Assembly: GCA_973895155.1 (NCBI GenBank)
Contig: OZ316897.1
Span: 15,499,375 to 15,563,374, forward strand
Origin: Marsupella aquatica
Taxonomy: Eukaryota > Plantae > Marchantiophyta
Length of the DNA stretch: 64,000 nt
Reading direction: 5' to 3'
Made by a program: the position numbers and the translations under genes. Below, in pieces: positions 1-45,800 of this stretch (position 1 is the stretch's first letter; each line of letters starts with the position of its first letter). A model generated the notes under the pieces. It was not told where the DNA came from and searched no databases. It saw only the letters and a list, made by a program, of their open reading frames with translations.

Positions 1-2902
1 GGTTGAATTGTTGGTCGCCTTGGAGCCATCCTAACTTTAAATTTTTTATTTTTAAAAGGCAAAAGGAACCCAGCCAAGGAAAGCAATTTGCACGTACGTA
101 CAGCTATCCTTAAGACCTCGACCGAATCCAGTTCCAAACTGTAAGGGAGTACTGGTCTGTGTTACTCTCCAATCACAGTCAAAAATCTCAAGGGTACCAA
201 CAGTTGAATTGAAAAGGCAGAAACTTTGTTAGAGAAACGAATTAAATGAGCTTCAGCGTGTCTTAAGGAAGATAACGTGTATACTAGGGCTTTCTCTTTA
301 TAACTACCTCAGAAGTGGATCGATGGAGGGCTCGATTGAATCCTTCGAAAATGAGATGCCGTTGTATATATAGTCTTTTGTTGCAAGGCGCCTACAACCC
401 CTCGCCTCCCAGCCGACGGAGCGTTATACGTAACTCACTCAGAGAATTTCGTGCAACACACACTTGCTGTCTTGATTTATTTAAAATTTAAAATTCAATG
501 TATATAAAGCGCTTATAATTACTTGACTCTGATCCCGTGTCAAATATAACTCTAGCTAGCTCATATAATTTTGACGACTGGTGTTCAACAACATAGGAAA
601 GACTAGCTAATTGAAAGTCATGCACAATACACACATGTCCAAGATAGTGTTCATCTCTGGAGATTGTCACAAACACCTTACGAAAATTGATGATATATCT
701 AACAATATGGTTTGGAATAGATTATAGTGGATTGTAATTACTTTACTGAGAACTATGATAAATAAATCGTATACAAATACCGTACAGTTACTACGTACCA
801 GTTTACGTACTAGTACCCTTTAAGAACTCGTTGGTGGGTGATGCTCGTGATCCGGAACCCTTCGGTGTATATTGCACACAGCACACGCAATCTTAGTAAA
901 GAGGCTCGTACTATGTCCAGCGTGGGTCAATCAAGATCTACCATGTATTTCGTTATCATGATAACGAAAGAAATCTTGGGGGAACAGAATCTGGTGATCC
1001 CATGATTTACGTTCGTACCAGTAAACTACTCAGATTTTGTCGAGTCTCAGGAGCAAAATCTAGGCCTATCCCGAACCCAGACTCGAAGCAGCGAGTATGT
1101 CGTACCAAGCTCACTCTGGGAGTGGCTAAAGTATACATGTACGGATATCTGAACAGATTAGGAAAATTCAGGGCAGTCAGGATACATCTCAACTTCTTTG
1201 CTTTTGCTTTCTTTTGCATTTAATCTCGAGGGAATGCAAACTTAAAACTCAGTTGCTTCATTCAGTGTACTTTGAAAAGACAGTGTTAGCATAACTTCCT
1301 GAACGTTCTAATTTAGGCTCGCCTTGCCTTTAACTTGCTCGTTTACTTTGCAGCTATTTTCTAGACATGGGTGCCGCTTGACTGCATGCTCTCAATTCTA
1401 AATGAATTCCCAAAGTAGAATTCTAATTAGCAAGACAGCATCACTTGCTGCAGCCTTTAATTTGCATGGGAAAAAAAGTTGCAGTCTTGTTTGCTTTTTT
1501 GTTTTTGTGGTGGAGGAAAAGACACGGAAACCACGTCCGGGTGATAGGGCCGTCAACAGGACTGTTTTGTTTAATTTTCTTTGAAACTACTTTGTCAATT
1601 GCTAGAACATGCATACCACGCAGATTTGCCAATTGCTACTACATGCATAACACGCAGAGTTCACATCGAGATATAATAAGACCAACTTGCACTGATAGCT
1701 AGATAACCGTACGTTAATGACGGAAAATTCGTTATGTTGATTCACAACGGCAACAGAAGCGGCTTGGTTCCAACCAAAACAATACTGAAACACCGGAGGC
1801 TACCAAGAAAAAGGGCCATGATCTCAATCTAGCTCATTGGGTTAAGTTTCTTCTTGGGCTCGCTAGGAAACTCTACCTTGCATATCAATATATACCTCAG
1901 AACTAGCTACCTGACTTCGAACTTGGACGATTAGATTTAGTAGCACTAACGGCCAGGTTCGCTCAGATAAATTGAGACTCAAGAAACCTGATCATAATGT
2001 AGTCACTCATTTCTAAACTTCTGATTTTTGACCAAGAAGTCAACTGAGATTTTAGCAAGTTGGATGGTATTATTTCGTTACAGCCGGCTGAAGACCAGGT
2101 GAAGGCTGTACTGAATCGTCTTCGTATCAAAGAGTGAACTCAAAGAAAACTAAAAAATGCAACCAGAACAGGCGGACTTTTCATAACTAGGAAAGTGAGT
2201 ACTCAATGTGGGAAAAGGGATCGGAGGACCAAAACGCTGTATACGTACTAATTGTCGCGCCTTTGAGTACGTGTCTACACCTGAGCGCACAAGCCCTTGG
2301 CAAGTTGCGGTCATAAATTTGATATGGTGGTCAACAACTCTATTAAAATGCGGTATAGATTATGTTGCGATAGCTAGTGAACAAGGGTGTTGCATTCCGT
2401 ACGAATTCTCCTATATACTGGCCTGCTTTTGTCCATATTGACTTAGTTATATAATATTGCTGCTATAGGCTCAATTCTCTCACAGTGCCTTGGCTCGAAA
2501 CTTGATTCTTTCACAGGCACCACGACATCCTCAATGAGGGATAAAATTTTCCTGACTGTTCATATATGTACTAACCATTCACACCAGCAAGGTACATTTT
2601 GGTGAAAGTTGTAGTCCTTACAATGTCAGAGAAATCAATGAAAATACTATCGTCTGATCTCTGGACACAGGATCGGCTTATTCTTGTCGGTCCGTTATTG
2701 CATCAACCCGTTACCTACAGCGGAAAAGGGGACTTGAACCCTCAACGCTCCGGAAGCTTAAGCTTTTGCAGCGAAAAAGTACAATAACAACATGGATCTA
2801 AGAGCGGATCCAGCGCCTGATTTCCTGCTCTTGTCATGCAATTAATGAATAGCAGCCTGATATACAAGAAGCGTAAAATTGAATTGAAAGCAAGGCAAGA
2901 AA

Positions 2903-3052
2903 AAACGAATCGGGAAAAATATACTGAAAGTCTATTACAATTCTCTAGGTAAGCGAATTCCTGAGGATGAGAAATAAACGAATCGGGAAAAATATACTGA
3001 AAGTCTATTACAATTCTCTAGGTAAGCGAATTCCTGAGGATGAGAAATAAAC
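2903..3052. repeat. Perfect 73-bp tandem duplication
   Basis: aaacgaatcgggaaaaatatactg...gaggatgagaaat at 2903-2975 and again at 2976-3048. Confidence 0.95.
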
Positions 3053-3558
3053 AAAGCGTGATAGTCCTCTGTGGAAGAAGATCATATTGAAAATTACAGT
3101 GACTGTGAGGAAGACCTACAAAAACCAGGCTATCCCTTACAATGAATTAGGAGTCACGTGTTTTAGGAACGCACGTACTGCCTGGCCTGTTGGTGAGCGT
3201 TGTGTTCCCGGCCATTACAGAAAGGCATGTGCTTAAATCTATATTTGGCACTGTGCACATTACTACGTACAGGAAGGTTGTGATGTTTCGAGGTCAGGTT
3301 TTTCCATATTCTGCAGTCTCACTGTAAGTGTTACACACTGAAATTTTCTGTTTGTATTTTGGACAACCTTACTCAGTGCAACAATCTCCTTGGAATGCTT
3401 TATAGTTGAGGGTACGTTTTCCCCACCCAAGATCTTTGCCAGTTGTGCAGAGGCACTAGTTGTAGAGTGGAGTTTCCCCTTAGGTAAGAAAAAACAACAA
3501 CAACCGAGCCTGTATAATGACTTAGTAATGATCTAAGACATTGAAACTCAGCAGGGTT

Positions 3559-3652: not shown

Positions 3653-3962
3653 ATGTGTAACCATTTCTGTAGGGGCTTGTTATAGTCATAATCTACTGTC
3701 CTGAATAGTCTAGCCAGTAACGTCTTTTCGGGCAGGAGTTACTTATGCTAGTGCAAGTCTGGGCTGGGTTATAGATTGTAACCTGCTCCCAGAATATTCA
3801 AAGAAGCTTTCCGGCTGCCGCCGGTCAGCTTCTTTTCATATTCCAGACGCAAGGTTACAGCCTAGTAACCCTGCGCCCAGACCTGCATTACCCTATACTT
3901 CAATCAATGACATACATAATCATCCATGGCCTCCGCAATAGCAGCTTTAGAGGTGTAAGATG

Positions 3963-4306
3963 TGTTGAGCAGAGACGACATTCGTAACGGCAAGCCCATG
4001 AACCATTCAACGCACAATAGTCGACACAGAGAGATACGTGGTTCACCTCCACATGAGGCTACGTCCACGGGCACACACAAGAGCTTTACTGCACTCTAGG
4101 TTGACCGGCCATACCAAGCATCCACAACACAAGTTCTCCCTATCTCTCAACTAGCTCCGTAACAATGAGCCTAAGTTCCACCAGGGTCTGGCATCAGCCC
4201 TGGCTATATGCACAACAGCACTATCGCTAACATTAGCTAAGTCCTAACCCGAGTTAGACTAACTGTGGTTAGCTCATGAGTCACAAGACTAGAGCAATAT
4301 CTAACA
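3963..4306. mobile_element. Solo LTR (344 bp)
   Basis: TGTT...AACA termini with 5-bp TSD AGATG (3958-3962 and 4307-4311); internal gtggttc...ctacgtccac motif typical of plant LTRs; no internal domain. Confidence 0.85.
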
Positions 4307-5571
4307 AGATGATGCCTGGGAGAAAATCTCTGGACAATCAGAGCAAGTACATAAACACGTGTGAATGAACACCCCTAATTATGTATGCCCCTTATTATAT
4401 TACTTTGCCAGATTTCCAAGTAATTATATATTTCATATTTGTCTACTTGTCACTATCAACTCAAAGGATTCATTATGTTGCAAAATGTCACCCCAAATGT
4501 CACTAGCTTAATAAAAATCAACCATTTTTTGATGTGAAAAACTTGATCAAGTCCAAAGTATATGGCTTTTTTAAATACAGGTTCTACAATCAAACTAGCC
4601 CAGCATTTTAGGACTTTTAAATATACACATATCCAAACTTTTTTTAATAAAACTACAGCAAGTTTAGGAAATCCTTTTTATCTTATGTGGAAAAGGAAAA
4701 ATTTAACCAATTGAAAATTTATATATGAGGAATAAAAGAAAGATAAAAATTAAGTGGAATACCCAGGTTTTTCCAAATTTTCTTTTTCACTACATGCAGC
4801 TTCCTAGTCCATATATTATTAAAAATGTAGTCACTTGCCTCTTATACAAGAGTTGTGTACCTAGGGTTATATGATTGCCATTGCGGTCATGTGTGCGTTG
4901 GTTTCATAATGCCCGCGAGGCAAAGAAGTGCAGGTGAGGCAAGAATTGTTGTCGTTCCAGTTGCTGAAATGCCAGCATTTGATTGGGTGGTGGTCGTTAC
5001 TGAAAATATTGTACCATTTTTGTACATCTTGTTGTTGCAAAAGTGATGTTGTGGGGGAGAGCAAAAGTTTGGAAGAGAGGAGTGCAAGATAGGCAACACT
5101 GGCTGGGCCATCATCAATGCCGCACCCTCTCTTTCCCTCCTTTGACTCTTCCAGCCTCGGTCCTCGTCGCTCCATCCCTCCTCCTCATTTCCTTCCCTCC
5201 AATACAATTATCAAAAAGAGAAGGAAAAGTCATTTAGAAAAAGGCAAATATATTACCCTTACCCCCACCCCACCAAAGAAAAGGAAAGTCTCTCCTCATC
5301 AACAGAAAGCCAAAAATCTTTCATGCCAAATGAATGTATTTCCCATGTAATCTTTGCATGTGTGTGCAGAAAGTACATACTAGAAGAGTACTACACTCTA
5401 CTCTAGGACATGTGCCTAGCAATCTAGTGTACAAACAAATTGAATGATATGATCTCCTTGGGCACCGTCCTTCATTCAATCCCACTTGTGCCAGAATTTT
5501 CCCTATTGAAAAAGTTTTTCAAGACATTATTGGGATGGATTGGATTTTTCTGGGATCCCTTGTTATAGTGA

Positions 5572-5787
5572 CCCTGGGCCCTCGGTCCAAAATAAAATTA
5601 GTGAACCCCCTCCCATTGTGACCCCTTTGCTCTCACCCCTTGTTATTTATGTTTTCCTATAAAAAGTCACCTTGTTACCGATAATATTAATAATTATTAA
5701 TTTAAAATCAATAAAAACCAACCTTTCAAGCATTCGCACTTAGTCTGCGAGGTACTCCACATATTATTGAAGACTGAGGGCCCAAGA
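5572..5787. mobile_element. Diverged MITE of the CCCTGGGCCC-TIR family
   Basis: Termini ccctgggccctc / gagggcccaaga; internal sequence clearly similar to the copies at 39804 and 61183; TSD not preserved. Confidence 0.8.
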
Positions 5788-7700
5788 TCATAATCTCTCA
5801 AACACTTTGGGTGCCCAATTTTATGGATCCCATGTACTGCCAATGCAAAGCCCATTGAATTTTTGCAAGACCAGTGAGAATGAAACAGTCTGGAACGTAC
5901 TGTCTTCTTGAACCTTCGTTGAATTAATGACCATGATTCGCCCCTTATTGGAATTAATCCGTGGACCCCCATGTTCATCCAAGGAATGTGTGTTTGATGA
6001 AGTGAAATCAATTTTCAACAAGGCGGTAATCGCCCGGGTAATCGACGGTTTTGAGTCTCCCGATGGTCTTGGTGTGTGCTCGTACAAAAGAAAAGTAACG
6101 CTCAAAAGATGGAGGAGATTTATTAATGGAAGGTTGAATATGGAAGAATTGAGTTTTCTGATGGTTTTTGCTTACACATTAGAGAAATCATGTTTCTATC
6201 ATTCATGATTGATCGTTTGTGAGTTACATTGAGCATTACCGCCACAAGACAGACTGGAGGACAACACTTAGCTATTGGCAAAAGAGCGCTTGTCGATTCG
6301 GTGGGAAGAACACACAAAACAAACAAGTCATCGCGTCACATGAAGGATTTGTAGTTTTTTTATTTAAGAAAGCTATGGTGTGAGAGGGAGACCAATGATT
6401 GTTTCTTTGACATAGAAGCTACATTTGGCGTCAACCTGTGTTCAGAGTGAGCTTCAGTTGAAGACTAGAGGAATGCAAACAATTCAAGCCGGGAAGCAAG
6501 CATTGTGGACAAGGGATGGCGACGTAATCAAAGAAATCAATTTTCAACGGCTAAGTTTGTGACAGTGATGACATTGTGATATCTCTTAATCGAGAAAGGG
6601 TTTCCAATGAGCCTCAGATTGACAAATTTTGTCAAGTTCCAAATGAGTTTTTGAATTTCTTTGCCTTTCCAATGAGTGAGTATAAGAAATATTGATCATG
6701 AGTCCATGAATTCTTTTAGCTTTCCAATATGATTGAGTCCGACATTGACAAATTTTACGTCAGATTTTGTCACGTTACTAAAGAGATCATGAGGTTTTCA
6801 ATCTCTCTAGCTTTCTAATGTGTGACATTGAGATTATTCGTCAAGAATTACAGAGATCATGAGTATATGAATTTCTCTAGCTTTCCAATGAATCAAACAT
6901 TGATAGATTTTATCAAGTACTAAGGAGATTGATTATTTAGTTTTACAATGTGAAGCCAAAGGGGTTTTAACTATGTACATTTTTATTGGTTGGTTTTTTC
7001 AAGCTTGCAAACAATTAAAAAATACAAGCATTTTGATATAAAACACTGATATATCTTTGACAAACATCAAAATGGTAACTTTATTTTACTAAATGACATA
7101 TCTCCCTTTGTATTTTGGTTTTTTTTACGTTCAATATTTACGGCATGGTGCCCCAAAAATTACGTTGCTTTTGCCACAAACAGGAATGTGCACGTTTATT
7201 ATTGTTAAAAGTATGATCATTCCTGTTTGTGGCTGGTTGTGATGATGTGGCTCAACCTCGTGGCAGGGAATTTGCAAGAGACCTCTCATGGGGGTCCGTA
7301 AATAAGTTGATGGAATTAGATAACATTAATTTGCGCTTCCATGCATTGTCATTTCCCTATTGCATTGTAAGTCAGAAAGTCTCAGTCATAAAGGCTGGAC
7401 AACATATGATAGTTTGTCTAATATTTTGCTTTCAGATTTCATCACAATTGTTCATATCAAGTGACTATGGATTTGGAAGATTTTGAGTTGTAGGACACTT
7501 GAAATCTTCCAATCCTACATAGACTTCATTGGGTACCAGAATGCTTATGTGGACACTCAGTTAAATTCTGGCCAGAGTTTGGACCTCTTGAGGTGGTATC
7601 TAATTGGAAGACCATTATATTTTGGTCTCTTCTTCATGCTGGCACTTGTAAGCATGACCTATATCTCTTCTCATTTTGGCCCTGCAGTTTCAATGTATTA

Positions 7701-7818
7701 CCTGACCACCTTTTCTAGTCAAAAGACCATTTAAATGGACCTGTTACTAGGTATGGTAAGAACTAAGTGACTCACCTGACCACCTTTTCTGGTCAAGAAA
7801 CCATCTAAATGGACCTGT
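7701..7818. repeat. Pair of ~44-bp direct repeats
   Basis: cctgaccaccttttct(a/g)gtcaa...accat(t/c)taaatggacctgt at ~7701 and ~7775. Confidence 0.8.
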
Positions 7819-8227
7819 GAAAATAGATTTGGTAAAAGTGACTCAACTATTGTTGCAGTAGTGAGTGAACCATGTCCTATGAGCAAGCTCTCAGGAAGAC
7901 ATTAAAAGCCAGCACTTAATTATTCAGGGAATGCATTATCCTATAAGTGCATGACTCAATTGATAAATGCATCAAAGTACTCTATGTAGTTGTTTGTTGC
8001 ACTTTAATATATATCAATAAACTCTTCTTATGTATGCATTGCATGAAGTAACTGATTATAAATGCATGACTGTGTACACTTGTAGATGGTCATGCACTTC
8101 TATAATATTTGTCATTTAATTAGTGCTTCTAGTGTTGACCTGCACTACGCAAACTACATTTTATGGTGCATTTACAAACTAAGGAAATCACTATAATAAT
8201 AGAGGACTATATGGGCCGGCCTGCATT

Positions 8228-8378
8228 TATCTGCACTCATACATGGAATTTCACTATCCACATTTACTGCACTTATCCATGGAACTTCACTACCACACTT
8301 ACTGCACTTATCCATGGAACTTCACTACCACAGTTACTGCACTTATCCATGGAATTTCAGTACCACACTTACTGCACT
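8228..8378. repeat. 35-bp minisatellite, ~4.3 copies
   Basis: ttactgcacttatccatggaa(c/t)ttcactaccacac repeated head-to-tail with no unique spacers. Confidence 0.9.
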
Positions 8379-11178
8379 GCATCCAATTCTCAGCATTGGG
8401 TGGGTGAACCGGTGAAGCATTTGTAAGTTTGGATTTCTGAATGCGGCAGGACAAAGCCCCATCCCCAAAAATGCAAATCTTGGAGCAAACAGAAGTAAAA
8501 AATTGCAGGTGACCAAAAATAACTATGGGTGGCTAAAATATAGGATATAGGAGGCTGTCATGATATGGATGGTTTTTGGATGGTTTTTGGATGCACGGTT
8601 CCCTGTATGCGCTTCAATCTCGTAAAGCCTCCCGCACGTGTACTCCAATGACTAGTGTTAGCAACAGCACTTGGCTCAATCGTCGAAGCTATCCTTCCTG
8701 AGATCGATCGAGCTGTGCTTACAGCTCCGGTCGAAGCTTTTGTGGGTCCACAAGATTGACCCATTCATCAGCCGGGAACTCAGCTTTCGTCTCGATCATC
8801 AATTGCCACTTGCACTGTGCAGTGTGCGCGCGCGTGAGCTTTACGATTTGAGCGCCCGCATCTCTTTCTGCCATTGAGTGACGTACGTACACCAGTGGAT
8901 AAACTTGTAACACCAGCTTTGTGCAGTCTCAGCGGAATAAGCCCAAATATAGATAGCACAGACGTCATACACCAAGCCATTAATTAGTTAGAGCAGCGTG
9001 CCTAAGAACTGAACGAGGAACCATTGTCATGCTAACCTCCCACTGGAGTACTTGATGACTTAATTCCCCTTATAATTGTACCTGGAGAGAACTATTGTTG
9101 GTCTAAAACCCTCACTAGCTCTAGAAGAATTAATCTATAATAATAATTTTCTATTCTGATTGATTAAATCTCTTCATAATATACTCATCCCACGAGGTCG
9201 CCACTACATTCGTTTTCCCCTTCACCTACGTAGTCAGATACTCTATTCCTATAGGTCACCAATTGACTGACTGATCGAGAATTTGAGAAGACAGTGATTT
9301 CCAATGATACTATAGATGCTTTCCAATTTAAACTAACAAGTTGTGGGACTCAAAATACATGCCTGGCTAGTAGCGTTCGAGAGCACAAGCAGTTACAACA
9401 ATAGGACATGACTTGTCTGAGTTTATGGAAGGGACTAACTGTTGCAGTATGGAAGGGACTAATGAATCAACGCCTCGATTGTTAAATGCCATGAGTGTCG
9501 TGCTCTAGCAGTACTGTCTAAATCAACATGGAATTCGAGAGAGGGCATTTCATTATTGACCTAGTTAATGACCATGATATATGCTGTGACAAATTGCCTG
9601 ATTAATTGAAAGCAACTGAGTTTATATATATATGAGCTTGTTTGTAGTCTTGATGATGCCTTCACCACGTCTACTTTGATCATTTGGGCATCTCTGCACG
9701 CCATCAGGTCCTAGAGTTCTGGGCTTGGCTCTCTATAGGTCTGTTCACCCACCTTGGACGAAAGCCTTATCACGTGGCTTTCTATTAGACGAGCTCTACC
9801 TGGTCCGATTCCTGGTTTCTTTATTTTTTATGATTCGTTCCGTATCAGACACCTAGTACCGTACAAGAGCAGCAGCCAAGCTAAGAGTTCTATCGATGTT
9901 ACTCAAGGGGTGTGATCAAATCAATGATAAGCTTGACTAGTTGCAGTTGCGACCTGCAGACCAAAACGAAACCATGTATTAGGTGTTGCCTATCACCTAA
10001 CACAGTACTGCGCTGTCCACGGATCTCCCTGATGTTAATTTGAGTTTCGGACCCATATAGAGGTCTGAAACTTCTAAATTAGAATTCTGAAATATATTGA
10101 TCGATCACGTATCCACTTGCATTGGAGGAAAACGAAGAATTCCCAAATTGCCACGAGTTATATATGAGGACAAGTGCCGTCCAAGAATAAAATTAGTGGA
10201 GAAAATTTGTGATCATAATGTTCTCTAGTGTAAATGTACACTAAGAGAGACTTGAGAATCTCGAAAGACTGCCATGTTTTTGCTTTTGCTGGGATCATGG
10301 GATCATTGTGGCCGTGAGATCTTTCGTATTGTTATTGTTTGATTTAGAGGCGACCTTCGTCGGCGCCCATATATCTTAGTTAGCGTTTCCTTGGAAAAGT
10401 CACTCGGATTGGGGCAGGGTTAATTTAGCTCAGTCAGATCGATTCAGATTCTGTCTTGTTCCATCACAACGTCGCATGCAGCGAAAGAACTGGGACACGT
10501 CCATCCATGATGTCAACATATATAGCACAAAGAGAAGTTTTACTACCGGCATTGCATGTGGGCCAAGCCACATCCGTCGATCCGATAGAAGGATCGGGTA
10601 CCGGTTTCGCGTGAGGAATAAATAATCAATCCAGAGTTTGTGATATATCGGATTGACGGCTTATTTATTCCTCTCCCGAAACCGTAATATACCTTACAGA
10701 AGCTTCAGATAAGTGGGATCAACGGCATTGAGAGACGTGAATTGCGAACAAGCCATAAATTGATACGACTTGGGATGGAATAACGTGTATTGGTGAAAAG
10801 TGGGGATTACATGAGGGTGAAAGCTTGCAATATCCATATGAGGGGAAATACTTGAGATAAAAAACTACACGAGAGATTAAAGTGGATGATGAAGAAGAAT
10901 TCAGGTGCAGGCTGCTGGACATTGGTAGAACTCTCGGCATTATAGGAATTGGAGAGCGGACGTTCGAGCTGTAATTACATAAAGATGGAGACTGGCTAAT
11001 TCAGATATATAATTGCGGACTCCGGACGGCTGCATCCGATGGCATTGCTTTGGCCGGCTGCCCAAAGCAGCCAGTCCCGGGCTAAGGTAATGGCCTTTTT
11101 GTGCCCTTTTTGATCTCATGGGCATTATGGCAACGCAACAGTCTATAGTCTATCATTTTATACGGAAATTAAAGTGAA

Positions 11179-11238
11179 CCAATTGTATTGGTTACTTTTA
11201 GCCAATTGCCAATTGTATGGGTTACTTTTAGCCAATTG
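11179..11238 (+). promoter_or_regulatory. Tandem 30-bp duplication with four CCAATTG sites ~100 bp upstream of the HypX-like ATG; candidate promoter element
   Basis: ccaattgtat(t/g)ggttacttttagccaattg x2; the duplication is seen, regulatory role is inference. Confidence 0.45.
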
Positions 11239-11336
11239 CAAGAAAGTCGGGAGGAAAATGATACTTTTGTCGAGCCTGAGGGCTGCGGTTCTAGTACTTA
11301 ATTCCGTTGTTGATTGTGACTGAATCAGCTTCGAAC

Positions 11337-13328
11337 ATGAACTGTTGCGCGGTACGTGCCAAGGTGCACTGGTGTTCTACTCTGTCGACTCTTCGTCCTC
11401 CTCCTCGACCTTTTACCTTCTGTACGAAGCTTGATGATCGATCTCGAACAGCTAGAGTCAGGCTGCTGTCCCTATCGAAAGTAGTGCGAGCTGTCCAGGA
11501 CACGCGTTTCAGCAAAAACATGAAGATCACACCGGTAACTGCAACTCTACCCAAAGATCTCAAGGTTTTGCTGTTCAGCGACGCCAACAACTGCATGACG
11601 CAAAAGACTTGGCTAGAATTGACAGAACTCGGCATCGAAGTCTACACGCACTTCGACACCAATGCCAACGCCATGATTCTTGCAGTCCACGCCGTAAAGC
11701 CCGACCTGATCATTTGCCCATTTCTGACGAAGCGCATTCCGGCTGAAATCTACAAGAACAAGGCTGTCCCGTGCCTGATAGTTCACCCTGGACCAGAAGG
11801 CGATCGGGGAATGTCGTCCCTCGACTGGGCGGTGATGAATGGCGAGCAGTCGTGGGGAGTCACACTTCTGCAGGCAGAGGAAGACATGGACACCGGTGCG
11901 ATCTGGAGCACTCACAACTTCGCCATTGACAAAAATGGTCTTCCGACCAAGTCCGGTCTGTATCGGAGGGACTGTATTGAAGCAGCCATGAAAGGACTTC
12001 ACGATGTCTTGGCCATGGTCACTAGGGGCAATCCCCAACCGCGTCAGCTCGATTACACAAATCCTAACGTCAAAGGGCGGTTGCAGCCACGTATGCTGCA
12101 GGCCGATCGAGGAATCGACTGGACTTTGCCTGCAGCTGATATCGCCCAAATCGTTCGAGCAGCTGACTCCCAGCCCGGCGTTCTGGACTCCATTTGCGGC
12201 ATTAAATACCTTCTCTTCGGAGCTCACGTTGAGCCCAATCCACCCATGACTGGATCTTCACCGCCTTTGTCACCAACCAAGTCTCTGCTGGCCAAACGGC
12301 GCGGCGCGGTCCTCATCTCTTGCGGCACAAATGGGCAAGAAGCGGTGTGGATTACTCATCTCAGAAAGCCCAACGCGGGTGAACGTCACCACATCAAGCT
12401 CCCGGCTACAGCAGTTCTGCCATCCAAGGTAGTGGAGTACCTGCCGGAATTGCCCGAGCCAAGTTTACTGTTGCCTTTTGGCGAACTTCCCAAGACATTT
12501 CAGGAGATCTTCGTATGGGAGAAGAGCCATGTCTGCTACCTGTGGTTCGATTTCTACAACGGTGCTATGAACACGGAGCAGTGCGCTCGTCTTGCCGTCA
12601 CTTTGGAGAGCATCAAAAAGTCGACCAGAGCACATGTCTTGGTGCTAATGGGAGGAAGAAACTTCTTCAGCAATGGGATCAATCTCAATTCAATTGAAGC
12701 AGCTCCTGATGCTTTCGAGGAGTCGTGGCAGAACATCAACAGCATGAATGATTTCGTAGAGGAGGTGCTGACGGCCTCTGACTTCCTGACCGTTTCTGTG
12801 TTCGGTGGAAATGCTGGGGCCGGTGGGGTAATGGCAGCTCTCGCCGCTGACGAGGTATGGACGACTGGAAGCACTATCCTCAACCCCCACTACAAATCTA
12901 TGGGGCTCTACGGGTCGGAGTATTGGACATACACCTTGCCGAAGAGAGTGGGTGCCAAAAAGGCTGCGGAGCTGACCGGAAACTCTATTCCCATCTCGGC
13001 AACCACCGCTCTTCAGATCGGCCTGGTCGATCGTGTCTACAAGGGCCGCTTCGGACCCAGTCATTTCCAAAAGTGGGTTGTTGAGCGCGCAGAAGCAATT
13101 GCGAATGACCCTGCAGTGCGGCAAAAAATCATTGAAAAGAAAACTAAGATCGACAACGAAGTTTTCAGAAGTAAAATCCAAGAATGTCGTGATTTTGAGC
13201 TGAAACAAATGCAGAAGAGTTTTGGAAGTCATGAATACAACGCCAAACGGCATGCGTTTGTCTACAAAATACGCAAGGGCACCTCATGCCTCCCAAGTCG
13301 CTGTATTGTAGAAAAACAGACACGGTAA
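11337..13328 (+). CDS. hypX: HypX/HoxX-like protein (N10-formyl-THF formyltransferase domain + enoyl-CoA hydratase/crotonase-like domain) with putative N-terminal organellar transit peptide; intronless, intact
   Basis: Family motifs PDLIICPFL, VHPGPEGDRGMSSLDWA, WGVTLLQAEEDMDTG, FYNGAM..QC, FFSNGINLNSIEAA, ESWQNI, GNAGAGG, LNPHYKSMGLYGSEYWTYTLPKRVG; first ATG at 11337 (track start 11307 is TTG). Confidence 0.93.
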   Translation: MNCCAVRAKVHWCSTLSTLRPPPRPFTFCTKLDDRSRTARVRLLSLSKVVRAVQDTRFSKNMKITPVTATLPKDLKVLLFSDANNCMTQKTWLELTELGIEVYTHFDTNANAMILAVHAVKPDLIICPFLTKRIPAEIYKNKAVPCLIVHPGPEGDRGMSSLDWAVMNGEQSWGVTLLQAEEDMDTGAIWSTHNFAIDKNGLPTKSGLYRRDCIEAAMKGLHDVLAMVTRGNPQPRQLDYTNPNVKGRLQPRMLQADRGIDWTLPAADIAQIVRAADSQPGVLDSICGIKYLLFGAHVEPNPPMTGSSPPLSPTKSLLAKRRGAVLISCGTNGQEAVWITHLRKPNAGERHHIKLPATAVLPSKVVEYLPELPEPSLLLPFGELPKTFQEIFVWEKSHVCYLWFDFYNGAMNTEQCARLAVTLESIKKSTRAHVLVLMGGRNFFSNGINLNSIEAAPDAFEESWQNINSMNDFVEEVLTASDFLTVSVFGGNAGAGGVMAALAADEVWTTGSTILNPHYKSMGLYGSEYWTYTLPKRVGAKKAAELTGNSIPISATTALQIGLVDRVYKGRFGPSHFQKWVVERAEAIANDPAVRQKIIEKKTKIDNEVFRSKIQECRDFELKQMQKSFGSHEYNAKRHAFVYKIRKGTSCLPSRCIVEKQTR

Positions 13329-16316
13329 TCGAGCCATGCATTAATTATTAGGAGCTTTTGAATTTTCGATCAGTATCTAATATGTCCGACACAAAACAGC
13401 CTTTGTTTTCTTTTATTAAAGATCGTGGGCTGTCTTGCTAGCCGGAATATACATAGAGAATGTTGACAAGGTTTTGGTATCAATCCTTGTGTAGCTAGCC
13501 AGTAATGGAGCCATTTCCATATCTATCAAAATTTTCTGCAACATTTCAACCATTGAAATGCACAGGCGGAAGAATAGGAAATATTTTGCAGATCAAGTCT
13601 ACGATTGTAGCCTTTGGCTATTATGAGTGGCGGCGCTTTTGCAATCCCCGGGATCATATTCTAGTTTGTCTCCAGTAGATGGCTAGAATCGTGAAAGTCA
13701 TCACTAGGACCTGTATAAATGCTAGGTTCCCAAGCTTTGATTTCGGATGTATCATGCATGACCCGTATTATCTGTTTGGACAATTAATGTATTATAAATA
13801 TGCGAGTCAATCTGGTTCATACTCTAGCCCATACAAGATGACTTGTATTCCAAATGTAGTCAATTGTACTTGGATTGGATGTGCAGCGAATTCAAAGATT
13901 TCATACAACTCTCGATGGTCAAGCGTTTAAATCTCGACCAGGGTTGAGATCCGGTCGTTGCCACTGTTTCAGATATCCATGGCAATTGGTTTCTAGATTT
14001 CTTTGCAATCCAAATCTGAAACATAGTGGTCCATTGTACACTAGGCATAGCTTAAATCAAGGAGTTTTGTGTTCTTGCTGATTAGTGTCTGTTTGCTGAC
14101 CTCGAGGTCTGCCTGACAATCTCGGCCTTAATTTCTTCATCTTTTCAATTCTTTTTACACTGCAGGTCCAATGACGCTGTGGCCAACCCAGCTCGGGACA
14201 TTTGAGTAATTCACTCACGAAGCTTTGGCTTCATGTGGATCTTTCGTCGAGGATGTACTTCAATTTGGCCTTCTGTTGTTTCCTTTCTAAAATCCCTTTG
14301 GTTATTGTGAAATGTGATTTACCACTTGCTCGTCACCTGTCCCTGGGACTAGTATTTACGTTCAGGTTTTCCTCTAGACCGTGAGCCTCAGGGGTAGACA
14401 GAGCCAGCCCTAGCTGGAATATTTTCAGAAATATATATAGTTAAGGTTGCATTCCCAACAGTTCCCGCACCAAAGGGTTAGTTTGTGCTCATGTCAGCTT
14501 CATGACAGAAACGTATGTTTATGACTTCCTTTCTTTTGTGCTACTCGACAGTATAGTTGCAATATTATTTTGGGTCTGGGTTTCATTTCGCCACCGGTTG
14601 AGTGTAAGCATAGTGAAGCATAACGCGTTTTGAAATACTCAGGTGGTACCAGTTGGTGGGCCTTCTTTTGACCTTCAAAGTTGAACATATGCTACGCTTG
14701 ACCTGACTTCAGAGAACCCATATTACATAATTTCTCAATGAATGTATGTCAGTACATACAGGACAGGTGCTATACCATGAAGGATCGGAGTTCTTTCAAT
14801 GGTAGCCTGATGGAATTCATACGGCGTAGTCATTCCAGTCATAAAAACTGAAAATGTTTGGAGGGACAGGGCGAAGAGACATTTCTTTCCTTCACGGTTT
14901 GATAATTGCGTTCGAGCCATTCAAATGGAGAATTTCAGGCAGAAGTAGCGAAGGAACTGGGATGGACCGTTGCACTTTGATAGCAGCTAGCATCAATACA
15001 ATGGAAGACACGAAGACCTGCGTTGCCTGAAGAGTTGATACCACTACTTTGTTGAGCCACGTAACTTTGCTCTCAGCCAAGAAGCAAGCAGCCATTTAGA
15101 TAGCACAAGTATTAAAATAATAACGTGAAATTGATCTATATTATTATTCATACGCATATCTTCCATTTAGCGTCTTTGCTAGAAGTGTCTGACGTCATAA
15201 ACTAACTGCCGTCTAACTGGCTCATTTGACTGCCCCGTCGTATGAGTCGGTAATCATCATACAATCCCACTAATGATTGCCTTCAGAGAAAATCGGATAC
15301 ACAATCTCGTACATCTGAACTAGTAGCAGTACACACCACGTTAATGGGAACATCTCTATAAATCTATGTCTAAACTAGACGACATAGATTCTAGCAGGAT
15401 CTGTTTTAGGGAGCATTGTACTAAATGACTAAGTAACACGGGAACCATTGTCATCAGACACTTCTCCAGTTCTCCATAAGCCTTGCTGAGTCCCCTTTCA
15501 TGGATGCTAAGTAAAGGTCTCCTGACTTCACATCGCCATGAAAGCCCAACAGAAAGCACAGTCAAGCAATACCATGTCAGAGACTTACCAAGGCATCGAA
15601 ATTAAGCATCGATGTACAGTCAGACTGAGAAAACCTTAAATTCTACCTTTTTAACCAAGTACGGCAGATTCATCACATATGATGCACAAGTGTGTACTCT
15701 AGTTGAGCAAGGCTTTTTTTAATGGTGAAAATTTGCCAAATCCTGCCTTGGGATTGCCTGGTGCGACTCAATAATGGGAATTTCTGCCAAAACTAGCACC
15801 CCACTAGCCGAGGTTAGAGCATGTTTACTCTTAATCTAGCACTCGTGGCGGTTGACCGTACCTACTCTCCACGCCTTTCTCAAACTCACCATATCCTCAC
15901 ACACGGGCGTATATTGGATGCATTCAGTTGAATGTATTTGGGTAATGTATCAAAATGTGATAATATAAAGTGTACTATGTCTAATTTGAAGTCCCCATGG
16001 ACTTCTAGGCGTGACTGATACAGAGTCACATAGGAATATTAAACATAAGAATAGGCAAAAGTTAAACACTCTATATTCCTAATGGGAAGGAGACCCCCCC
16101 CCCCCACCAAAAAAAAGTTCTCAACTAGGTCTACATTTGTTCTCGTGCACAACCGATGTTCATTGTCAAGCCTTGGACCAGCTCACTACTTTTGACTTGC
16201 ACAGACTGGCTGCAAATAAAGAAGCAGGCCAAGATCAGACTACTAGCATATATAAGTAAACCCTACCAATCACACTCTGTAAGAGTAGAAGATGAGATGA
16301 ATTTCTATTGTGGTTA

Positions 16317-16677
16317 CACTGTTCGCCATAATTAGTGTGACTAACACTAATTCAAGAGCGCCCATTTTCAGGGTCTACTCGCGAATTAGTGTTAGTCACA
16401 CTAATTTTGTGCTAACACTATTTTCGTGCACATGAATTAATGTTACTATGGTCTTAAGAGTGGCAAAATAGAGAAAAAAACTATTTTGAAAAATCCACAA
16501 CAATTAGTGTTACTTTGGACTAAATATTATCCATTTTTTACAAGATTTAAACTAAAGTGACAAAAATATGTTTTGAAAACCGACAAAAATTAGTGTTACT
16601 TGGATTCAAAATCATTTTTCCCAAAATTAGTGTTAGTAACACTAATTCTTGCATAACACTAATTACGGTGAACAATG
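16317..16677. mobile_element. Tc1/mariner-type MITE (361 bp)
   Basis: Imperfect ~22-bp TIR cactgttcgccataattagtgt / acactaattacggtgaacaatg, TA TSD both sides, many internal aattagtgt/acactaatt repeats. Confidence 0.8.
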
Positions 16678-16702
16678 TAGTTCAATTATAGAATTTAATC
16701 AT

Positions 16703-17116
16703 TGTCATGCCGAGGGGCAGTGCCTCTTGAATGTGCACATAGGCATGTCCCTCGCATGCTTGCTAGGTATGTAGTTAGGGCTAGTGTACTACTTGAGTTA
16801 GTGTCATGTTCTTGTAGCGAGTCTGGGCCGATCTTGAAGCAAAGGTGTTTGTTAGTGTGACGCCTGGACCCGGTCCTACTTAGGGCATGTTTTTCTTTGC
16901 CATTTTTAAGTTCTTCTTGAATCGTTGTTGACAGAGCTCAGACAGTACTCGTCGGTTCCGTACATGGGATTCACACAGTGATTCGTTAGATGCTCCCGAC
17001 CGATCTTGGCATCCCGCCGGTTTTCGATTCGATTTCAGTACTCTTGTTTCTCTTACGCCTTTTATTCAAGAAGAACTCTCAAGATAGCGGTGAAGGGAAG
17101 AAGATTGCTCATGACA
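16703..17116 (+). repeat. Putative 5' LTR of the Gypsy element (414 bp)
   Basis: TGTCATG...CATGACA terminal inverted heptamer; TGG-starting PBS-like tggtgaagccgg at 17131; gag downstream; partner LTR not in window. Confidence 0.65.
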
Positions 17117-26411: not shown

Positions 26412-28284
26412 CTATACGATTCCAGAATTCACGTCTTTGGCCAACACTAAGCACCCAAGGAGCAGAAGGACGATGTTCCAACCTGTGGCAGGATCAACTT
26501 GTACCCATACATCTGGATGCATTTCCAACTCTTCACATGCCTCCCTGAAGTTAGTGTCCTTCTCCCCATAAAAATGAGCTATCAACGCCTTCCCCACATT
26601 TCCCTCTATGTGCATGGGGTCTAAAAGATGGTGGATCTTCAACTCTGACCAATAGGGCAAACTGGCTAGTATACTCCACCTCGTCAACCCAGTACCATCA
26701 AAGGTGAGGGGATCATCAGGGTCTGCCACCCTATCAGCTAGTGACTTCCAATGCCCAAAAGTTGTTGGTTCCGGAATTTCCCGCATATCACCAAGGGGCA
26801 TGTCAAAGGAGGAAAATAAAAGTGGGTCAGACCTCATCTCATGCCCCATCGGAAGAAACTTTGTATGCCCAATGTAAACAATCTTCCTAAGCCATGGGGA
26901 CCAAATTGCCATATCTTGCAATTGTGGACCACAGGTGGAGCAAGCTTTGTACCCCTGAGTTTGCAATCCAGAGACAAAGCCAAACCCTGGTTACACCAAA
27001 AATAAAACCAGACTAAATGTTAGGGTTGTCACATGACAAACAAGTATATTAAAGAGCATATCAAAGAAGGGTGGCATATGGTCAAAAAGTCATCTTACCA
27101 GGATAGTCATGCATTGTCCAACAAACTACCCCTCTCAATTTAAATACACGTGGAATGCCTCCTGTATTTTTCCTGCCATCATATGCCCACACTCCACCCC
27201 ACAGTTTTTGGAGTTCTCCAATCAATAGTGCCAAATAAGTGTCAAAGTTCTTCACCTTTTTTGGACCTGGAATAATCAAAGACAGCAAGAGGAACCCCTT
27301 CTTCATGGATAGCCATGGTGAAAGGTTGTAATTCATCACAACCACATGCCAAACTGATGTAGGTCTTCCCTTGCCTCCAAGGGCATGAGGACTAACCCCA
27401 TCAGATGCCAATCCCAACCTCACATGACGAGGATCATGTGCAAAGTCTGGCCATGTTTCCTCAATATGTTTGACTGCAAGAGAGTCAATTGGCAACCGCA
27501 TAACACCAGGCTCTGATCGATGAGTCTTATGCCATACCATCAACTCTGCCAAATCAGAACACCTGTACATGTGCAACAACCGAGGAATGATGGGAAACCA
27601 ACGAACAGCTTTTCTTGGCACCTTCTTTGTAATCATGTTGGGGTCATACCGTGGCTCATGACATTCAGTACACTGTGTCTTCTTCTCATCGGCCCCATGA
27701 AATAACATGCAATCATTCACACATGCATGAATGATATGATATTCCATGCCAATTGATGAGAGAACACGCTTGGCCTCCTTCCAAGTTCCTGGCAACACAT
27801 TGCCAGAGGGTAACATAAGGTCATGGCAAAGTGCAAACATATCAGATAACAAGGCATTGCTTGCCTTGTGTTTGGCCTGTAGATTCATCAACCCCAAGAT
27901 AGCAGAAAGATGACTCAAACGAGCACCCTCATAGATAGGAGTTCGGGCATGTTCCTCTGCTTCCTCCCATTGGCGCTGTCCCTCGGGGGTATGTCTTGGT
28001 CGTGGATCATTGGGGGGCACATGACCTCCTTGATCAGCAGACACCTCAGCATCATCACCAGGGATGTCAACACCAAACCAATCAACCATAAAATCATCCA
28101 TGGCTCTATCTTGGTCATCAATAACCTGTTCATATGTTCTGGGTACATTGCGATCAGGGTTGTTGCTTCCACTGTCACTTGATGAGGAATGTGACTCAGA
28201 GCCTTGTCCTTCTTCTGGCATACCCATTTCCCGATATGCTGCTCTCAATCTCCGCGGTAACATATTTTGAGAGGGTCGCACATT
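26412..28284 (-). pseudogene. CACTA TNP2/TnpD transposase, C-terminally truncated
   Basis: IHACVNDCMLF, VRWFPIIPRL, VRLGLASDG, LIIPGPK, WTMHDYPG, LPYW...HLLDPMHIEGNV; intron ~27098-26988; C-terminal part absent. Confidence 0.9.
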
Positions 28285-34453: not shown

Positions 34454-35548
34454 TTAATCTTCCAACATATCATCAAAATTAGCTGGATGATCTTCCTCAG
34501 GTGCTTCTACTACCTCATCCTCTACATGGTCCTCGTACTCGACAACCTCAGTCATAACCGTGCTAGTTTGTAGTCCACCAAATGGCGGTTGAATCTCCAT
34601 AGCTTGAATCCCGGTCCCTTGGACTTCATGCTCCTCAGTCAATTGCCACCTAGAGTCTAGAGTTAAAATTTGCCCTACAATAAAATCTACTTGAGTAGGG
34701 CTCAACTCAATTGCTGCAGCATGTCGATGACTGAGGAGGGCTGCACAGGTTGTGGAGCCTGTCCCTGCACAAAAGTCTATAATAACCCAATCCCCTTCAT
34801 AGCTAAAATGATCCACAAAATATTGTGATAAAGCTGCTGGCTTTTGGTAGGGGTTTACTATTTCCCCCAAAAGAGTCACTGACTTCACAGTTACGCATGG
34901 GACTTTAATGATGTTTCCTCTACTCTCTTCTTTTGTGAAATTGTACATCTCCCTTGTCCTGATTCCATCTTTGCTATGAAAACCAATTGTCCAATTTTCA
35001 AAAGACCAGGCCAACCTGTTACCTGATGGATGATCATGAACATTAGTCTTCTCCCAAATACCAGCTTCAATTCCCGCATTGCAGGTTTTACCAAGAGCAT
35101 TCATAACACTATTAACCTGCTGCAAAGAATGTATTACAACAAAGCGCCAAGCCTCAGCTGTTGTCACACTTGCAAATCCCTCCACCATATCGATGATATC
35201 ATTCTCCTCAAATGCCTTCTCGTCATTCTCAGACCCAACCGCATTGAAACCGTATGGGATGTCAGCTATGGCCAAAGTATAATTTTTTGGTGGCAAAAAT
35301 GCCTTGCAAACCCTGGCATCTCCTGTATGAAGAGCATAGGACATCACATCGCCATCAGCATTCTTCCATGTGAATTCAGATGATTCAACTTCCTCGCTTG
35401 CAAGCTTCTTGTTGTAGTCTTCAATTGCTTTGGCCACAAAATTCCTGAACTGTAGAGGAATCTTATCTGCAGGAAGTTCCTCTTCTCCGACTTCATCAAC
35501 CTCATTTCCAATCCTTGGCTTCTTTTTCCTCTTTGAGCAGAGTTTGAT
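34454..35548 (-). CDS. Beta-class amino (N4-cytosine/N6-adenine) DNA methyltransferase domain exon
   Basis: LHTGDA, motif IV-like ADIPYG, NPYQKP, then motif I IDFCAGTGST...AIE; motif IV precedes motif I; AG acceptor gives exon start 35548 in frame. Confidence 0.85.
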   Translation of the reverse strand: MKLCSKRKKKPRIGNEVDEVGEEELPADKIPLQFRNFVAKAIEDYNKKLASEEVESSEFTWKNADGDVMSYALHTGDARVCKAFLPPKNYTLAIADIPYGFNAVGSENDEKAFEENDIIDMVEGFASVTTAEAWRFVVIHSLQQVNSVMNALGKTCNAGIEAGIWEKTNVHDHPSGNRLAWSFENWTIGFHSKDGIRTREMYNFTKEESRGNIIKVPCVTVKSVTLLGEIVNPYQKPAALSQYFVDHFSYEGDWVIIDFCAGTGSTTCAALLSHRHAAAIELSPTQVDFIVGQILTLDSRWQLTEEHEVQGTGIQAMEIQPPFGGLQTSTVMTEVVEYEDHVEDEVVEAPEEDHPANFDDMLED

Positions 35549-43411: not shown

Positions 43412-45800
43412 CTAACTCGTGGGGGGTATGTCTCTATCTTCCACTACAACTACGTTGGGTCTCTCTTGGACTATGGACCGTGATCTGGGAATATACGGCA
43501 TGACAATGGACCACTCGGGGTCATTGGGATAGGGTAGGTAAAAGCATTGCTCAAGGTGATGTGGGAAGGCAAAGGGATCTGAGGACCTCCAGTTGGAACT
43601 GATGACACTATTTGCGGATGTCTTCAAACGAGTAAAACCGCATGCATCATCTTCACAAGTACGATTGTGGCCTACAAGATTCATCTTGAACCATTTGCAC
43701 TTGAATACCACTTCCTCCAAAGTAGTATGTGCATGGTACTTCACTGTTAGGATCTCCTCAATCTTCCCATAATGGGCCACGGTGGAGCGAATGGGATTCA
43801 TGTCTGACATGCTACTCTGGGAATCTTGGGTGAACCAACCCATCACCCCACAATCCTGTGTAGCTGCCCTCTTCTCATCAAGTCGTTCCACACGAAAATG
43901 TCTCCCCTTTGACCACATGGCAGTCCGAGTCGTGACTATAAGTAGTGGACCATGAACCAAGGTACGAAGTTTATCTGTCACGTTTGGGTAGTGTAATACA
44001 CTCTCCCCGGTACCCACCAGGGCATCCACTTCTAACAACTTCTCCTTCATGTATGGGTGAAACTTGGGAAATAACCGTGGGCGTCGACTGTTTTGCTTCT
44101 CCTCCTCATAAAATATTGTCCACTCCCCGACAACCTCGGGTGAGTTATACAACATAAATGTTGTGAGCTGTAAATGCTCTGCTAAGCCTATGAGACGCTC
44201 TCCAGATGCCCCAGTGAGTCTATCATCCTCGTAGTCAGCCTCTCGTGCTGCCTCATCTATCCATCCCCTAGGAGCACTAGGATCTAGTGTGGCAACTATG
44301 TTTGTACAGTAAAACATACTCTCTGCTCCAGGATGACGCTCCGCAATGCTACCTTCCACCCTAGCGCGATTAAAGACATATGACTTCATCACCCCCATAT
44401 AACGCTCTACCCAATACATCCATCGACAATGTACTAGGCCTGCAATTGCAACCTCGTGCACTAAATGTATGAGGAAATGAACCTGACCATCAAAGAATGA
44501 GGGAGGGAGTGCCTTCTCCAACTTGCAGACAACCTCTACTCCAAATATCTCCATAGCAGCAATGTCATCGGACTCCTGTACCTCCTTTTGACATACCCAT
44601 CTTAAGAGCTTACCCAATGACCAAAGGGCATCACGAAGTTCCTCACTACCCAATCCAATAATAGCAACTGGAAGAACATGTTCAAGCAACCGATGATAAT
44701 CATGTGTCTTCAAGAAAGATGGCCATTTTGGAGAATCCTCCCCCCCAAATGCCTTCCGAAGATTGGTACCATAACCTGTGGGAAACCTCATCAACCCAAT
44801 ACGTCTGCAAAACTCAATGCGCTCTGCCCTTGTCAAAACCCAAGGAGGATGGATGCTAGGGGGAGCACCAGGGGGGTCCAAAGATGGCCAAAAACCCAAA
44901 AGACCATGCATCCCCATCTCCTCACAACTTTCTCTCCAATTGTTATTTTTCTCCCCATATAGATGGCGAATCAATGATTTCCCCACATTCCCCTCAATGT
45001 GCATAGGGTCTAATAAGTGATTAATGGGCATATCTGACCAATATGGCAATTGTGACAATGCAGACAAACTCTGCACATCGGAATTGTGACAATGCCAACT
45101 CTGCACATCGGAATTGATGTCGCAATCGAGGGATAAGAGGAAAGTACCTCATAACCTTTTGCGGTACCTTCCCCGTCAACATGTCATCACGGTACCGTGG
45201 CTTCTGACATTTAGGACATGTAGTGGTATTTTCATGCTCACCCCTAAAAAGAATGCAATCATCCACACATGCATGTATCACCTCATACTTCAGGCCAATG
45301 GACCTCAACACCTGTTTAGCCTCTTTCCAAGAGGTTGGCAATGCATTGCCTACTGGCAAAATACGATCATGCAAGGTACGGAAAACATCATCCAAAAGTA
45401 GATTGCTTGCCCCATGTCTTTGCTGCAAGTTGAGCAACAACATTATTGATGAGAGCCAAGATAACCTACTCCCCTCGAATATGCGAGTACGGGCATGACG
45501 TTGCGCCTCCTCCCATTGCTTGTCTTGGGACCCCCTAGAAGGATGTGGATGACTAGTCCTTTCATGGGTTGAACCAATGTCCTCCAAACCAATGTCATCG
45601 TGATCATCATAGAATTGGTCCATGAGCTCATCCATGGCCCTCTCCTCATCAAGATGGTCTTGGATAGGATCATCACCATCATGTCGTACCCCATCCTCTT
45701 GCCTTTGTGGTTCATGCCCACGGTTGGCCACCATGGCCTCAACAAGGTGTTGTCGCATAGCTCGTGATATTACCCCAATATCAGGAGTTACATATTGATT
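43412..45800 (-). pseudogene. CACTA TNP2/TnpD transposase with central deletion
   Basis: IHACVDDCILF, MRYFPLIPRL then jumps to LPYW..HLLDPMHIEGNV, LKTHDYH, PPSFFD, RWMYWVERYM, FKCKWF; catalytic middle (SDG..DYP) missing. Confidence 0.9.

Follow-up and report, generated by a model that had tools for sequence, protein, structure and literature searches.

A HypX-type gene in the genome of the liverwort Marsupella aquatica and its relatives among eukaryotes

HypX, also called HoxX, of bacteria such as Aquifex aeolicus and Cupriavidus necator (Ralstonia eutropha) is a decarbonylase of N10-formyl-tetrahydrofolate (N10-formyl-THF) which supplies the carbon monoxide (CO) ligand of O2-tolerant [NiFe]-hydrogenases. 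To our knowledge no other enzyme draws on the folate one-carbon pool for CO synthesis, and work on HypX has been confined to its part in the maturation of aerobic [NiFe]-hydrogenases. We know of no [NiFe]-hydrogenase in eukaryotes. What, then, could a gene of this type be doing in plant DNA, and how did it get there? The question is raised by a 64,000-nucleotide stretch of contig OZ316897.1 of the liverwort Marsupella aquatica (the window), in which positions 11337-13328 of the plus strand encode a HypX-like protein, referred to below as the query. On the evidence of sequence comparison and modelling, we think it probable that the locus is a functional gene in the nucleus of a liverwort-type plant, that it encodes a HypX-type bifunctional enzyme, and that it was inherited vertically in streptophytes and serves a role in CO or one-carbon metabolism that does not depend on hydrogenase.

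A HypX-type protein from a single open frame

The HypX/HoxX-like coding sequence was recognized as an open reading frame (ORF), by its Pfam domains and by alignment with Aquifex HypX. Counted from the first ATG (11337), it is a single intronless frame of 663 codons on the plus strand, encoding 663 amino acids (aa), with its TAA stop at 13326-13328. The preceding in-frame stop, TAG, is located at 11292-11294, and extension to an upstream TTG would give an ORF of 673 aa (11307-13328, +). The stop-free run as a whole comprises 677 codons, whereas in 200 shuffles of positions 8001-17000 the longest such run reached 231. Residues 1-541 of Aquifex HypX (structure 6J0P) aligned with query residues 74-643 with E=5.6e-112. 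Since this alignment is collinear inside one ORF, the gene is intronless. When the window was searched with HypX using tblastn, 11337-13328 was the single matching locus.

Pfam identified Formyl_trans_N (PF00551) at aa 103-200, Formyl_trans_C (PF02911) at 255-345 and ECH_1 (PF00378) at 410-642. This is the order of domains in HypX, with the two parts of the formyltransferase followed by the crotonase on one chain. Together with the Aquifex alignment, these matches place the N-terminal formyltransferase module at aa 74-345 (11556..12371, +) and the C-terminal crotonase/ECH-type module, the predicted decarbonylase, at aa 386-643 (12492..13265, +). No HypX-specific NCBIfam model matched the query, and only sub-threshold matches to ArnA, Fmt and enoyl-CoA hydratases were obtained from that collection. 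A preliminary description, made from the DNA letters, had recognized here a full two-domain HypX gene, intronless and free of stops, and this description was confirmed.

The fold was assessed with an AlphaFold2 model computed from a 17-sequence alignment. The model had a predicted template modelling score (pTM) of 0.79, and most of its core had a predicted local distance difference test score (pLDDT) above 80. Foldseek superposed it on 6J0P over 582 columns, with a template modelling (TM) score of 0.91 and a root-mean-square deviation of 2.8 A. Next came structures that resembled one half each: ArnA, 10-formyl-THF dehydrogenase (FDH) and Fmt matched the N-terminal half, and enoyl-CoA hydratases the C-terminal one. 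The bacterial HypX proteins share ~38-45% identity with the query across the whole core and resemble it in architecture, fold, catalytic residues and contacts with coenzyme A (CoA). In contrast, the hydrolase domain of FDH (ALDH1L1) and ArnA/Fmt have in common with it only the fold of the N-terminal module and a His/Asp pair acting on N10-formyl-THF, at ~16-20% identity and E ~1e-14.

In Aquifex HypX, formyl transfer has been assigned to the triad His74/Asp80/Asp109 and decarbonylation to Tyr416/Glu426, and CoA is contacted by Q15, R131, S194, Q195, N306 and R542 (PMC6802093). By alignment, the triad corresponds to H150 (codon 11784-11786, +), D156 (11802-11804, +) and D185 (11889-11891, +) of the query, and Tyr416 and Glu426 correspond to Y519 (12891-12893, +) and E528 (12918-12920, +). 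Loss of catalytic residues had been considered in the preliminary description, and none was found: all five positions are invariant in the 48 aligned sequences, the query included. Five of the six CoA contacts are also retained, as Q89, R210, S278 and Q279 in the N-terminal module and N408 in the C-terminal one, identical to the first five residues listed above. Finally, the query keeps 111 of the 112 columns that are invariant among 15 diverse homologs. By sequence and by predicted fold the protein is a HypX, and its gene is under purifying constraint.

The conserved core begins at residue 74 and is preceded by a leader of 73 residues (aa 1-73, 11337..11555, +). The leader contains 9 R, 6 K, 15 S+T, 3 D and no E, has a net charge of +12 and was modelled as disordered over aa 1-68 (pLDDT <50). 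About 70 additional N-terminal residues, rich in S, T and R and poor in acidic residues, had been noted in the preliminary inspection, and in composition they do resemble a targeting peptide. They are a candidate organelle presequence.

Relatives among streptophytes, other eukaryotes and bacteria

Relatives were collected by a word-indexed search with a length filter, and the best 120 matches were considered. The closest was a protein of another liverwort, Calypogeia fissa, with 77% identity. A block at 46-52% identity followed, made up of Ceratodon purpureus, two proteins of Chara braunii, Bradysia coprophila, Hypsibius exemplaris and several further assemblies. Trichoplax, forms fused to FolD and named bacteria shared 41-45% identity with the query. 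The best bacterial match had ~44-45%, and a scan with one genome per bacterial species returned more than 596 bacterial relatives, the best at 44%. Neither a fungal nor a vascular-plant protein was present among the best 120 matches of this length-filtered search.

The eukaryotic members carry database labels such as "hydrogenase maturation factor HoxX(-like)" or "uncharacterized protein". They include Ceratodon KC19_9G128500, Chara braunii CBR_g23882, the "HoxX-like" proteins of Bradysia, Hypsibius and Trichoplax and, in a cluster of the moss clade, Physcomitrium patens XP_024383899 / A9TPZ2, annotated as uncharacterized. With the query these proteins have in common the clade, the architecture and the invariant residues, at 77% identity for Calypogeia and 46-51% for the rest. 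A search of the accessible literature found no paper on eukaryotic HypX/HoxX or on the Physcomitrium accessions, and a 2025 review of [NiFe]-cofactor biosynthesis did not mention eukaryotes. The eukaryotic sequences are thus public in databases but unstudied.

Three trees were calculated, all without an outgroup: a FastTree tree of 121 rows, an IQ-TREE LG+G4 tree of 76 rows that included the named bacteria, with support from the Shimodaira-Hasegawa-like approximate likelihood ratio test (SH-aLRT), and an IQ-TREE LG+C20 tree of 32 rows under the posterior mean site frequency (PMSF) approximation with ultrafast bootstrap. In each of them all named eukaryotes formed one clade apart from all named bacteria, with support of 100 (100/100 in the PMSF tree), and the pair of query and Calypogeia was likewise supported at 100. 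The 11 streptophyte rows also formed one clade in all three trees, with support of 90, 90 and 52/52, respectively. Chara and the mosses were joined at 96/86 in the PMSF tree. The preliminary description had taken the gene for a lineage-specific horizontal acquisition, possibly from a fungal donor, and had proposed a phylogeny as the check. With bacterial and plant homologs included, the gene fell on the eukaryote side, and neither the acquisition nor the fungal donor was supported.

One member of the clade came from a metagenome contig of the Joint Genome Institute (JGI), L081, on which an intronless HoxX-like gene (1414-3207), 50% identical to the query, is adjoined by Sybindin/TRAPP, Utp11 and Nicastrin genes (3805-8179). 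Because of these neighbours, this member is truly eukaryotic, and the contig looks like part of a compact protist genome carrying a HoxX-like enzyme. It was the only eukaryote-type locus in the metagenome scan, the other 79 being of bacterial type.

The distribution within eukaryotes is not simple. The Hypsibius exemplaris protein (P0010; also P0026) was placed beside the streptophyte clade in the LG+G4 tree (support 97), but had no firm position under the site-heterogeneous model, and the animal members, namely the tardigrade, the fungus-gnat group and the Trichoplax group, did not form a single clade. The eukaryotic history therefore includes losses and/or transfers from eukaryote to eukaryote. 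A search of the Atlas with the Physcomitrium homolog returned bacterial HypX-like clusters plus one cluster dominated by Ascomycota, with 206 members of ~708 aa that carry ECH_1 and Formyl_trans_C and resemble the HypX family. Since this cluster is absent from the best 120 sequence matches, fungi have a more distant version.

Taken together, the comparisons indicate that the query most likely belongs to a distinct, eukaryote-wide branch of HypX/HoxX and was inherited vertically in streptophytes, here represented by Chara, mosses and liverworts. The simplest reading would be an old eukaryotic HypX lineage that the ancestor of streptophytes already had. The eukaryotic clade as a whole may have come from bacteria; this origin would then be ancient, with a donor that cannot be identified.

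A proposed role without hydrogenase

No hyp or [NiFe]-hydrogenase genes were found in the 64 kb by tblastn with bacterial HypA/B/D/E/F, NiFe large-subunit and MHYT proteins (best E=0.011 over 38 aa), in agreement with the preliminary description. In this respect, as in its separate eukaryote-type clade and its 73-residue leader, which bacterial homologs lack, the query differs from bacterial HypX.

From homology with the Aquifex and Cupriavidus enzymes we infer the following reaction. The N-terminal module (H150/D156/D185) would transfer formyl from N10-formyl-THF to a tightly bound CoA, and the CoA arm would swing via an internal cavity to the crotonase module, where Y519 and E528 would decarbonylate formyl-CoA to CO and CoA, with THF regenerated. 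That the Tyr/Glu pair is invariant in every eukaryotic member speaks for use of the decarbonylation step. In vivo, the enzyme could serve either as a folate-dependent, heme-independent source of CO or as an overflow valve by which 10-formyl-THF is turned back into THF. As there is no [NiFe]-hydrogenase for the CO to go to, one of these would be the most likely role. If the leader of 61-73 residues is translated, the site of action would probably be inside an organelle.

The nature of the substrate is addressed by some of the relatives, in which a FolD-type methylene-THF dehydrogenase/cyclohydrolase (PF00763 + PF02882) is fused C-terminally to the HypX core. Ascophyllum (a brown alga), Togula (a dinoflagellate) and other rows have such fusions (eukaryote-type P0036, P0060 and P0052), and so does a bacterial-type, Chloroflexi-like group (P0065 / L006:580-3243). 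FolD produces N10-formyl-THF, and the fusions therefore support this compound as the physiological substrate. Like the proposed enzyme, FDH removes 10-formyl-THF and gives back THF. In FDH, however, a phosphopantetheine arm accepts the formyl group, which is then oxidized to CO2, while the HypX route leads over bound CoA and the crotonase module to CO. With heme oxygenase, the known source of CO in plants and animals, the proposed enzyme would have only the product CO in common, the fold, the substrate (heme) and the chemistry being unrelated.

The genes within 8 kb of HypX were also examined at the 80 closest bacterial loci. Hyp or NiFe genes were present at 23 of the 80, genes for MHYT-domain, LysR or strictosidine-synthase-like proteins were present instead at 25, and neither class of neighbour was found at the remaining 32. 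With hydrogenase genes nearby in only 23 of 80 bacterial loci, the missing client is not peculiar to eukaryotes. At 15 of the 80 loci (L009, L023, L029, L030, L036, L041, L045, L052, L053, L057, L064, L071, L073, L077 and L080), a membrane protein of ~260 aa with an MHYT domain (PF03707) is encoded 34-220 bp from HypX, for example at L045:9905-10681. This pair spans two phyla, being found in Actinomycetota (Kitasatospora/Nocardia/Streptomyces) and in Gammaproteobacteria of the Cellvibrionaceae type, with no hyp/NiFe genes within 8 kb. A gas-sensing function has been proposed for the MHYT domain, and the two proteins could be a CO producer and its sensor, independent of hydrogenase. Homologs in Pseudomonas (L016, L021, L024, L027, L028, L032, L043, L046 and L062) are followed directly by a LysR regulator and, ~2.3 kb downstream, by a strictosidine-synthase-like/SGL gene, with no hyp genes nearby (e.g. 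L027:9941-10831, L046:11988-13028).

Alternatives, genomic surroundings and significance

Several points weigh against the interpretation as a functional, vertically inherited and organelle-targeted enzyme. The sixth CoA contact, R542 of Aquifex HypX, corresponds to K644 in the query, although this residue lies just outside the alignment, one position past its end, and the pairing is uncertain. Monophyly of the streptophytes reached only 52/52 under the site-heterogeneous model, which is the best of the models used, so that vertical descent is consistent with the trees but not demonstrated by them. We know of nothing in these organisms that accepts or senses CO. The other points concern the leader. 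Alignment indicates an alternative start at Met62 (codon 11520..11522, +), which would give a leaderless protein of 602 aa, and the gene model of Calypogeia begins 6 residues upstream of Met62, without a leader. The GC content at third codon positions (GC3) is 0.47 in the leader and 0.60 in the core, and a frame open by chance upstream of Met62 is only mildly unlikely (P 0.04-0.07).

These latter points sustain the strongest of the alternatives, a cytosolic enzyme that starts at Met62, with the "transit peptide" being a 5' untranslated region which happens to be open. The insect-type relatives, which have no leader, also speak for it. On the other hand, the leaders of mosses comprise 81-99 aa and are rich in S/T, those of Chara comprise 80-110 aa, and N-termini resembling presequences are present in many other clade members, for instance as "MLR/MLK" in the Trichoplax subgroup. 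Moreover, the leader has a net charge of +12 and no Glu, and the other two frames across the leader stretch contain 4 stops each. We regard a start at Met62 as a serious possibility, though not the favoured one. The pattern among relatives supports the idea that organelle targeting recurs within the clade, and for the query itself, targeting to an organelle, of whichever kind, by the predicted leader is plausible.

A less probable alternative is that the protein handles formyl-CoA without serving as a source of CO. In this case, the first step might run in reverse and salvage formyl groups into 10-formyl-THF, for example from the cleavage of oxalyl-CoA or 2-hydroxyacyl-CoA, or formate might be released. 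The formyl transfer is presumably reversible chemically, no hyp genes are present in the window, no client for CO is known to us in eukaryotes, and we know of no gene assigned to the disposal of formyl-CoA in plants. Yet the residues equivalent to Tyr416/Glu426, mutation of which gave a HypX-minus phenotype in Ralstonia (PMC6802093), are invariant in every eukaryotic member examined, an invariance not easily accounted for if decarbonylation played no part. The FolD fusions point to 10-formyl-THF as the input and not the output. A peroxisomal role was considered as well and was ruled out, as a C-terminus resembling the peroxisomal targeting signal type 1 (PTS1) was found neither in the query nor in 52 clade members, and this also counts against salvage. 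We consider such a function unlikely, and a CO or one-carbon role remains our preferred interpretation.

It appears very improbable that this plant received the gene from a bacterium or fungus by a recent, lineage-specific transfer. Such a transfer could be invoked to explain the absence of introns, the patchy distribution in eukaryotes and the membership in a family best known from bacteria, as well as the base composition: as noted in the preliminary description, the gene is richer in GC (0.521; GC3 0.58) than its flanks (0.40-0.44), and only 0.8% of 2-kb windows attain this value. The contrast, however, is the ordinary one between coding and intergenic DNA and no mark of foreign origin, and the protist relative on L081 is intronless too. 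Transfer is further opposed by the top match being another liverwort (77% versus 44-45% for the best bacterium), by the fully supported separation of named eukaryotes from named bacteria, by the grouping of mosses and Chara with the liverworts and by the lack of fungal sequences among the best 120 matches.

No more credit can be given to a decaying or unexpressed relic without current function. The surroundings are rich in transposable elements, but the frame remains stop-free for 663 codons, against a shuffle maximum of 231, and 111 of 112 invariant columns and all catalytic residues are kept although the protein differs from the nearest ortholog by 23%. That the contig is misassembled or contaminated with bacterial DNA, for which only the bacterial reputation of the family speaks, is hardly credible given the CACTA and copia genes in the same window, the position of the protein in the eukaryote clade beside a liverwort ortholog and the leader that bacterial homologs lack.

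By its CACTA and copia content, the window is of plant type. Coding remnants of CACTA elements (Transposase_21, DUF4218/DUF4216) and of copia elements (gag, Pol_BBD, rve integrase) are present from ~27 kb onward. The gene had been described as lying beside decayed transposable elements; this is true of the window from that point on, whereas the ORFs within ~9 kb of the gene had no Pfam match, and no neighbouring host gene was identified there. A retrocopy or capture by a transposable element was considered, and a poly(A) tract and long flanking repeats were looked for around the ORF; none were found, a result that is not conclusive. Upstream of the gene, a tandem duplication of ~30 nucleotides with four CCAAT motifs (11179..11236, +), 100-160 bp before the ATG, is a possible promoter element, and an ATTAAA at 13415, 87 bp past the stop, is a possible poly(A) signal. 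Among the ORFs associated with transposable elements, two with unusual passengers, an N6/N4 DNA methylase domain (34454-35437, -) and a SET domain (45929-46885, -), adjoin CACTA transposase parts (Transposase_21, DUF4218/DUF4216). Further ORFs of this group are at 27082-28281 (-) and 43412-45106 (-).

A strongly constrained HypX, catalytically complete as judged from its residues, is thus present in a plant genome, in a clade that includes the model moss Physcomitrium. Contrary to the idea of horizontal transfer with which the locus was first described, the gene appears to be an old one of streptophytes and eukaryotes, with no vascular plants among the best matches, and not a recent import. 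Whether eukaryotes that lack hydrogenase use HypX to form CO or to get rid of formyl-THF has thereby become a testable question. We suggest, tentatively and by analogy with the bacterial enzyme, that bryophytes, charophytes, several animal lineages and many protists might share an organelle-targeted, folate-dependent CO synthase of the HypX type that operates without hydrogenase. If so, eukaryotes would be able to form CO independently of heme, for use as a signal or metal ligand, and/or would have a one-carbon overflow valve that releases THF from 10-formyl-THF, and the use of HypX independently of hydrogenase may also exist in bacteria, beside the putative gas sensors of the MHYT-domain type. 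Some plants and animals may then have a CO or one-carbon pathway of the HypX type.

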